Origin: Gracilinanus agilis
Taxonomy: Eukaryota
Direction of reading: 5' to 3'
NCBI RefSeq assembly: GCF_016433145.1
Contig: NC_058131.1
Coordinates: 347,547,265 to 347,611,264, forward strand
DNA length: 64,000 nt
Below, piece by piece: positions 28,380 to 29,330 of the stretch (position 1 is the stretch's first letter; each line of letters begins with the position of its first letter). Below the pieces are notes generated by a model, which was not told the DNA's origin, did no database searches, and was given only the letters and a program-made list of their open reading frames with translations. The translations under genes and the position numbers were made by a program.

Positions 28380-29330
28380 CCCTTGGATAAAAGGTGTCCA
28401 TCGGGGAGCGCGGGAGGGCTGTGTAGGCACAGAAAAGAACCCCAAGGAATCCTCTTGGAGTTGCGCTGGTCAGCCTTTCCTGGAGATCTGGAGGCAAGAG
28501 CCGCTTTGGGACAGGGGTGTCCCAGCGTGAATTAGCCCTTTAACAGGCATCCGCTGAGGAACGCAGGCGCACTCATTTCCTGATCCGATTCTGGCCGAGG
28601 TGGAGCGCCGTGTCACGTCACGCCCAATTCTACCTTCCATTGGTGGGGGGTCTGCAGATTCTCGTCAACGATTGGCTGTGAGGGACGCGTCCGGATGTAA
28701 TGACCAGACCCCTAAGAGTCGAACCACGCCGGCGCAGTTAGCGGCTGCTGGAAGATCTGTGTTTCTGGCTGAATCACCTTGGCCGGAGGTGGGGAGCTGG
28801 GGAGTGGAGCGAGGGGCAGAGGGGCAGAGGGGGTGGGGGCGTGGGAGAAAGAATTAGAGAGTCCTGCGGACCGATAGTTGGGCGGAGGAAGCAGGGGGAC
28901 GCTGGGTGCCGCGCCCGCCCTGAGCTGCCCTTTACTTCCCCACAGCCATGGGATCGCAGCTGAGCGGCGCGGGTGATGGCGATAGCCCAGGCCCGGCCGA
29001 CCAGGCCACGGAGCAGCCCCAGCCCGCCGTCCCCGGGGGTGGCGAGGGAGCCCCCAGGCCCCGCCCTGACCCCGAGGTGTGGGGGCCCCTGGACGACGTG
29101 CGCTTCGTCATCGTCTGCACGTCCTGGTACTAGCAAGGCCTCAGAGCAGCGTCCGGACTCGCGGAACGTCGTGGTGACGGAGGGCAGCTGCTGCCTCTCC
29201 CTAGCCGCGGGCATCTCTCCCCTTCCCCGCCCCCACACTTTCTTCTGTGCCTCTTCGCTTGGTAATGGGGGGTGGGGCGGGGCGGGGCGATTTGCCACTA
29301 CTTCCCTCTGTCCTCCTGTCTCCCCAGCCT
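28380..29330 (+). promoter_or_regulatory. MMP24OS CpG-island promoter
   Basis: CpG-dense; GTCACGTCACG at 28612-28622; CCAAT/ATTGG at 28624, 28639, 28671; ETS-like CCGGATGT 28691-28698; donor gag|GTGGGG at 28789. Confidence 0.75.
28948..29133 (+). CDS. MMP24OS: MMP24OS microprotein, 61 aa (MMP24 opposite strand)
   Basis: Acceptor tttacttccccacAG (28944-28945), then ccATGG in strong Kozak context. MGSQLSG...[20 protein letters not shown] matches the recalled human termini MGAQLSG... and ...[17 protein letters not shown]. Syntenic position between EIF6 and the MMP24 3' end. Confidence 0.9.

Follow-up and report, generated by a model that had tools for sequence, protein, structure and literature searches.

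MMP24OS in a didelphid opossum: a conserved microprotein with an N-myristoylation motif and a near-invariant C-terminus

In placental mammals, the gene MMP24OS (formerly MMP24-AS1; Mmp24os1 or BC029722 in mouse) lies between EIF6 and the 3' end of MMP24, and its ATG sits beside the acceptor of a 5' UTR intron. The protein begins with MGxxLSG, continues with a Pro-rich linker and ends in a 17-residue motif at the stop codon. Ribosome profiling showed that the human MMP24-AS1 smORF is translated; it is also conserved and gives stable expression of a FLAG-tagged product (PMC5575669, 2017). The myristoylated N-terminal peptide of MMP24OS has been detected by mass spectrometry in HeLa cells (PMC10696250, 2023), and a myristoylated intact proteoform, with b and y ions, has been reported from human brain by top-down mass spectrometry (PMC12173667, 2025). 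MMP24OS is among the better-supported "lncRNA-encoded" microproteins: it is translated into a stable, lipidated product that has been conserved for about 160 million years. Neither the gene nor its lipid anchor is new, its conservation and its marsupial orthologues have likewise been recorded before, and of the inference drawn in an initial annotation of the present DNA, every element except the role given to the C-terminal motif is in the public record. That annotation described the gene as often treated as a lncRNA, a description that does not hold for current databases, in which "protein MMP24OS" is annotated in dozens of mammals, marsupials included.

The window analysed here is a stretch of 64,000 nucleotides from Gracilinanus agilis and matches chromosome record CM028236.1 of GenBank assembly GCA_016433145.1. 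Homology and synteny identify a 61-codon ORF in it as the MMP24OS orthologue of a didelphid opossum. The ORF has the MGxxLSG N-terminus, and WGPLDDVRF-x-I-x-CT-x-WY stands directly before its stop codon. The genes are ordered FAM83C, EIF6 and ORF, and the ORF is tail-to-tail with MMP24, the stop codon of which ends at 35107 on the minus strand (Table 1). The name MMP24OS follows from this EIF6/MMP24 arrangement and from the position of the ORF on the strand opposite to MMP24. EIF6 also lies upstream in Monodelphis, in the dunnart (Sminthopsis crassicaudata) and in five of the six placental loci compared (dugong, bear, camel, guinea pig and Rousettus); for the sixth, Rhynchocyon, no neighbouring gene is listed. 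Several details differ from placental MMP24OS. The C-terminal motif reads F-V-I-V in marsupials and F-L-I-A in most placentals; the start of the linker is Gly/Asp-rich, whereas placentals have PQ repeats; two bases instead of three separate acceptor and ATG in the window; and the distance from EIF6 to the promoter is about 4 kb, compared with about 1 kb.

Database searches agree with the orthology proposed in the initial annotation. BLASTP aligns the opossum protein with camel "protein MMP24OS" (2e-17, 67% identity over the last 39 residues), a match first found by word-indexed search, and with the dunnart protein over the whole ORF (8e-25, 65% identity). A two-sequence profile search returned 46 proteins with E-values from 4e-36 to 2e-5, for which the source names, where given, are either MMP24OS or MMP24 opposite strand; the exceptions are a few records that are unnamed or labelled "hypothetical". 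When 1.84 billion representative proteins were searched exhaustively with an HMMER profile, 11 clusters came back, all with E ≤ 1e-10, with nothing between 1e-10 and 1e-3 and no relatives outside MMP24OS. One of the clusters is Monodelphis domestica XP_056678130.1, annotated as "protein MMP24OS", whose 61-residue core is identical to the window protein at 56 of 61 positions and differs at five. RefSeq lists the Sminthopsis protein under this name as well. The ORF is intact in both Monodelphis and Sminthopsis; disruption in other marsupials, which the initial annotation took as evidence against its reading, was not found there. Pfam gave no match at E ≤ 1, a profile search of PDB sequences none at E ≤ 10, and an Rfam scan of 28208-35600 none. 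At the level of sequence, these searches returned no distant relatives, paralogues or PDB entries of MMP24OS. Three Logan-derived sequences that look primate, possibly human (P0004, P0007 and P0013), were left out of the DNA work.

Table 1. Features of the MMP24OS locus and its neighbours, in window coordinates
Feature	Position	Strand	Evidence or remarks
FAM83-type gene (FAM83C)	14458-19481	+	SACK1 domain
EIF6 exons, stop at 24579	20995-24579	+	eIF-6 domain
CpG island covering promoter, exon 1, intron and whole CDS	28400-29300		GC 0.65; CpG observed/expected 0.73
Two CCAAT-type boxes (CCAAT 28624, ATTGG 28639)	28624-28643	+	Unaligned with dunnart
Promoter block with ATTGG (inverted CCAAT) at 28671-28675	28649-28706	+	Near-identical in three marsupials; DNA alignments
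Exon 1, putative non-coding 5' UTR	28707-28788	+	Donor kept in Monodelphis and dunnart; 5' limit inferred
GT-AG intron of 157 nt in the 5' UTR	28789-28945	+	Homologous introns needed by two marsupial RefSeq proteins
MMP24OS CDS, 61 codons plus TAG	28948-29133	+	ATG at 28948, TAG at 29131-29133; ORF call, homology, codon-model selection
N-terminal MGSQLSG, N-myristoyltransferase substrate motif (Gly2, Ser6)	28948-28968	+	Pattern in 65/65
Acidic Pro/Gly/Gln/Glu-rich disordered linker of variable length	28969-29079	+	Alignments, AF2, omega about 0.33
C-terminal 17-residue motif, ending at the stop codon	29080-29130	+	12/17 positions invariant in 63 sequences
Putative 3' UTR	29134-30615	+	Poly(A) signals ATTAAA 30080, AATAAA 30590
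Last MMP24 exon	35107-35517	-	Hemopexin and DUF3377

By its length, a 61-codon ORF is unremarkable in DNA of 70% GC, and other frames of the same GC-rich DNA carry ORFs of 119 and 194 aa. Its significance comes from homology and substitution pattern, not from ORF length. The ATG stands in a strong Kozak context, with G at -3 in both the spliced and the unspliced form and G at +4.

The protein ends are the most constant parts of the family, which was counted over 69 sequences, 65 of which carry the N-terminus. The N-myristoyltransferase pattern of PROSITE PS00008 is G-{EDRKHPFYW}-x-x-[STAGCN]-{P}. The window protein fits it with G-S-Q-L-S-G, as do all 65 of these family members. Met-Gly is present in every one of them and position 3 is occupied only by A, S, T or G, and Ser6 and Gly7 are each kept in 64 of 65 (Ser6 is Cys in Jaculus, P0036). 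At the other end, the 17-residue motif ends the protein in 63 of the 69 sequences, and in those 63 it is always the extreme C-terminus. It contains the only Cys of the opossum protein, Cys57, which is invariant and lies five residues from the C-terminus. The initial annotation had assigned both an N-myristoyltransferase consensus and a near-invariant C-terminal motif to the ORF, and the family counts support both assignments. It had also proposed a lipid anchor; human MMP24OS is N-myristoylated by mass spectrometry (PMC10696250, PMC12173667), and its opossum orthologue would by homology be modified in the same way.

Between the two ends, the linker varies. The length of the core ranges from 50 to 68 aa across the family, which fits the length-tolerant linker of the initial annotation; however, the linker also retains constrained positions, and those resembling P-A-A-P-E and P-R-P-E/D-P persist into marsupials. 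The opossum protein is acidic, with nine Asp or Glu residues against three Arg; it lacks an N-terminal Cys and a basic patch. AlphaFold2 run with the family alignment gave a mean pLDDT of 59 and no stable secondary structure, with values mostly below 65 in the linker and about 70-74 only over the C-terminal region. The 61-residue product is therefore predicted to be intrinsically disordered.

The coding sequence is under purifying selection at the protein level, concentrated on both protein ends. GY codon models (F1X4 and F3X4, in iqtree) were fitted on the species tree to a codon alignment of eight therians: the window, dunnart, dugong, elephant shrew, guinea pig, fruit bat, bear and camel. 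Omega for the whole CDS was 0.25 (F1X4) and 0.18 (F3X4), and omega = 1 was rejected (2dlnL of 64 and 89, p < 1e-15). For the seven N-terminal and 17 C-terminal codons, omega was 0.15 and 0.05 (p from 1e-6 to 2e-12), and for the linker about 0.33 by the same type of model; taking CDS and ends together, rejection of omega = 1 ranged from p < 1e-6 to 1e-21. The sample leans to species with an annotated ORF, a bias that does not explain omega values this low. These values agree with the proposal in the initial annotation that the protein has been under selection since the marsupial-placental split. Between the window and Monodelphis, eight codon differences are synonymous and five are non-synonymous. 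Marsupials differ by indels that keep the frame (15 nt), and the position of the stop codon is invariant.

Constraint on the nucleotides of the C-terminal motif was also considered, dS being about 0.2 there, and was rejected: synonymous variants occur at seven of the 11 degenerate codons that encode an invariant residue. The fixed degenerate codons of the 17-mer are two-fold codons that end in C, GC3 in this context is 0.7-0.9, and GC bias is enough to account for the low dS.

The DNA upstream of the ORF has the structure expected from the initial annotation, which placed the ATG 2 nt past a splice acceptor, in strong Kozak context, downstream of a CpG/CCAAT promoter. A CpG island with three CCAAT or ATTGG boxes is present, and CpG observed/expected is 0.05-0.10 in the flanks of 28400-29300. 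A 58-nt segment of the promoter (28649-28706) is kept in the opossum, Monodelphis and the dunnart (90% over 52 nt against the dunnart by blastn), and the promoter sequence around it has diverged. This block is probably the core promoter, and transcription would start downstream of it. Neither the marsupial block nor the intron has a DNA match in the six placental loci by blastn-short.

The last base of exon 1 is 28788. Its 3' end reads ccggag, followed at the donor by GTGGGGAG, with the GT at 28789-28790. The polypyrimidine-AG acceptor reads ...ctttacttccccacAG, with the AG at 28944-28945, and exon 2 begins at 28946 with the two bases (CC, 28946-28947) that precede the ATG. Homologous introns are required by both marsupial RefSeq models: the Monodelphis protein can be reproduced only by removing a GT-AG intron of 167 nt (3268-3434 of the Monodelphis locus, L009), and the Sminthopsis protein only by removing one of 109 nt (4097-4205 of the dunnart locus, L002). 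The donors and acceptors of both align base-for-base with those of window 28789-28945. The two species thus share intron, donor, acceptor and promoter block with the window, and their introns back the junction of 28788 to 28946 that had been proposed at the outset. In five of the six placental loci, a ...cag acceptor lies three bases before ATGGGC. At the DNA level, the ATG is therefore found 2-3 nt past the acceptor of the 5' UTR intron.

The spacer between acceptor and ATG is CC in the window, CCC in Monodelphis and the dunnart, and ACC or AAC in placentals. This 1-nt difference in a run of C could be real or an assembly error; the CDS is unaffected by it.

The 549 nt that follow the stop codon are 80% identical to those at the Monodelphis locus. 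On the minus strand, a poly(A) signal lies at 29755, facing the plus-strand signals at 30080 and 30590. With these signals, the 3' UTRs of MMP24 and MMP24OS would be allowed to overlap, and that of MMP24 would then be about 5.3 kb long.

Exact and word look-ups in Logan found no transcript contig of a marsupial MMP24OS. An exact look-up of the window protein returned the genome record only, and the 61-aa core of Monodelphis is not on record there; a word search with the Monodelphis protein returned only the two RefSeq entries. Of the words sampled from 28400-31400, 62-73% are present in three small contig sets of the opossum itself (runs X20-X22, 80-101 million letters). If these sets are RNA assemblies, such coverage would be expected of a locus that is expressed, and it is at most a hint of expression.

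The gene structure described above, with a 61-residue disordered protein as the product of MMP24OS, is very probably the right account of the locus. Frames other than that of MMP24OS could in principle be the conserved element, since the 194-aa antisense ORF (28774-29358, minus strand) and the 119-aa ORF in the +1 frame (28973-29332) are longer than the 61-aa ORF, and stops are almost absent from the antisense frame in each of the three marsupials. However, long stop-free alternative frames are expected at 70-75% GC and a GC3 of 0.7-0.9, and a scarcity of stops is likewise expected in the complement of a GC3-rich coding region. In addition, DNA conservation between opossum and dunnart falls outside the 61-codon CDS, where the alternative ORFs run on, and the substitutions fit the MMP24OS frame, so that a conserved protein in either of the longer frames is scarcely credible. 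Quite improbable, too, is a locus whose main role is non-coding, as an antisense partner of MMP24 with overlapping convergent 3' ends, and in which the ORF is incidental or secondary. The tail-to-tail orientation, the poly(A) signals that permit 3' overlap and the historical name MMP24-AS1 would all suit such a locus, but omega of 0.18-0.25, synonymous change beneath invariant residues, the fixed stop position and in-frame indels, and the detection of the human protein by mass spectrometry (PMC10696250, PMC12173667) would not. An antisense role could be compatible with coding; the coding signature is beyond what an antisense role can explain.

Granted the MMP24OS frame, its start codon and its C-terminal chemistry also admit other readings. 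RefSeq begins both marsupial proteins at an upstream ATG in exon 1, giving 151 aa in Monodelphis and 99 aa in Sminthopsis, with N-terminal extensions of 90 and 33 residues, respectively (L009:3001-3267 and L002:4001-4096, corresponding to window 28560-28788). Several placental entries are likewise extended, and the base at -3 of the conserved ATG is C in Monodelphis and the dunnart, a weaker context. The real product might on these grounds be a longer protein that is not myristoylated at this glycine. This is very unlikely, because in the human protein the myristate sits on the Gly of MGAQLS (PMC10696250, PMC12173667), which requires the MG(A/S)QLSG start, and because the marsupial extensions behave as untranslated sequence would. 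They share no similarity with each other; in the window, the spliced frame upstream of the ATG contains four stops, and the only upstream ATGs, at 28695 and 28700, open ORFs of one and 13 codons; and the 1-nt indel in the spacer gives exon 1 a different phase in the two didelphids. With extensions that are unconserved, closed by stops here and subject to shifts of phase, exon 1 would be 5' UTR and the Met of MG(A/S)QLSG the true start, and the upstream starts of the two RefSeq marsupial models are probably over-extensions. As for the C-terminus, it is unlikely that CTSWY is an extended CaaaX-type box whose Cys is farnesylated, which would place a lipid at both ends of the protein. The fixed distance of five residues between the invariant Cys and the C-terminus would suit such a box, but a terminal Tyr is not a usual X residue. 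Farnesyltransferase does accept some pentapeptide boxes; in the part of the supplementary list of human pentapeptides that holds CTSWY, however, this entry is unflagged and neighbouring rows are flagged "Hit" (PMC11121372). The human top-down spectrum reports myristoylation only, and its C-terminal y ions match (PMC12173667).

With translation from the MG(A/S)QLSG Met preferred, the following course can be proposed. The CpG-island promoter with its CCAAT boxes would drive a transcript with a non-coding exon 1, the 157-nt intron would be removed, and translation would start 2 nt into exon 2. The opossum protein would lose Met1 and receive myristate on Gly2 from N-myristoyltransferase, giving it a weak, reversible affinity for membranes. 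The Pro-rich linker would serve as a flexible spacer, and the invariant C-terminal 17-mer, with its fixed free carboxylate and the only Cys, would be the working end.

Resh and McLaughlin's two-signal model holds that myristate alone binds membranes weakly. A second signal would be needed because MMP24OS is an acidic protein that has neither a basic cluster nor an N-terminal Cys to complement a myristate-only anchor, and the 17-mer is proposed for this part because it is the only other conserved element. It may work as a short linear motif, folding onto a membrane-held partner; alternatively, it may be a second hydrophobic, possibly S-acylated, contact with the membrane. The initial annotation had called the 17-mer a binding motif, which it may be. 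The canonical PDZ-ligand and LIR patterns of ELM do not seem to fit it across the family (terminal Tyr; A, V or T at position 56).

MARCKS and BASP1 offer an analogy for such a design. They share with MMP24OS the myristoylation of Gly2 and a disordered chain, and in them, too, the anchor binds weakly by itself and depends on a second element. That element consists of basic clusters in MARCKS and BASP1, which are much larger proteins, whereas MMP24OS is acidic, about 60 aa long and has a hydrophobic C-terminus that contains Cys. Pfam and the HMMER profile search revealed no sequence relationship of MMP24OS to either protein.

A broader proposal is that MMP24OS was born in the therian stem lineage, from the CpG island between EIF6 and MMP24, and that its C-terminal Cys is reversibly S-acylated, either pinning the protein to the membrane at both ends or switching it between one and two anchors. 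We regard this combination as rather doubtful. No non-therian relative was found among the 1.84 billion representative proteins, a set in which small ORFs from outside mammals are under-annotated.

The marsupial copies sharpen the picture of what is constrained in MMP24OS: the Gly2/Ser6 signal, the exact 17-mer, including the lone Cys and the free carboxylate, and the placement of the ATG just after a 5' UTR intron. The present analysis adds the exact conservation of that intron, the probable over-extension of the RefSeq marsupial starts, a promoter block shared by the three marsupials, and a search of a very large protein library that yields no relative beyond therian MMP24OS. The marsupial data help in the design of experiments and leave existing knowledge of the field unchanged.

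Some minor features of the sequences are recorded for completeness. Runs of N, which are assembly gaps or masked sequence, occur in the window at about 12100-12260 and about 55900-56230. The last coding piece of EIF6 (24361-24579, plus strand) ends ...MRDSLIDR and is followed by a stop codon, whereas placental EIF6 extends a few residues further and its final residues differ; a lineage difference could account for this, as could an additional small exon or an error in the assembly. Within the MMP24OS family, the tenrec entry (P0046, Echinops/Tenrec) has an N-terminal motif that lacks the AQLS part, and in the elephant protein (P0043, Loxodonta) the beginning of the C-terminal motif is partly duplicated within the chain (PWGPLENPWGPLDD).
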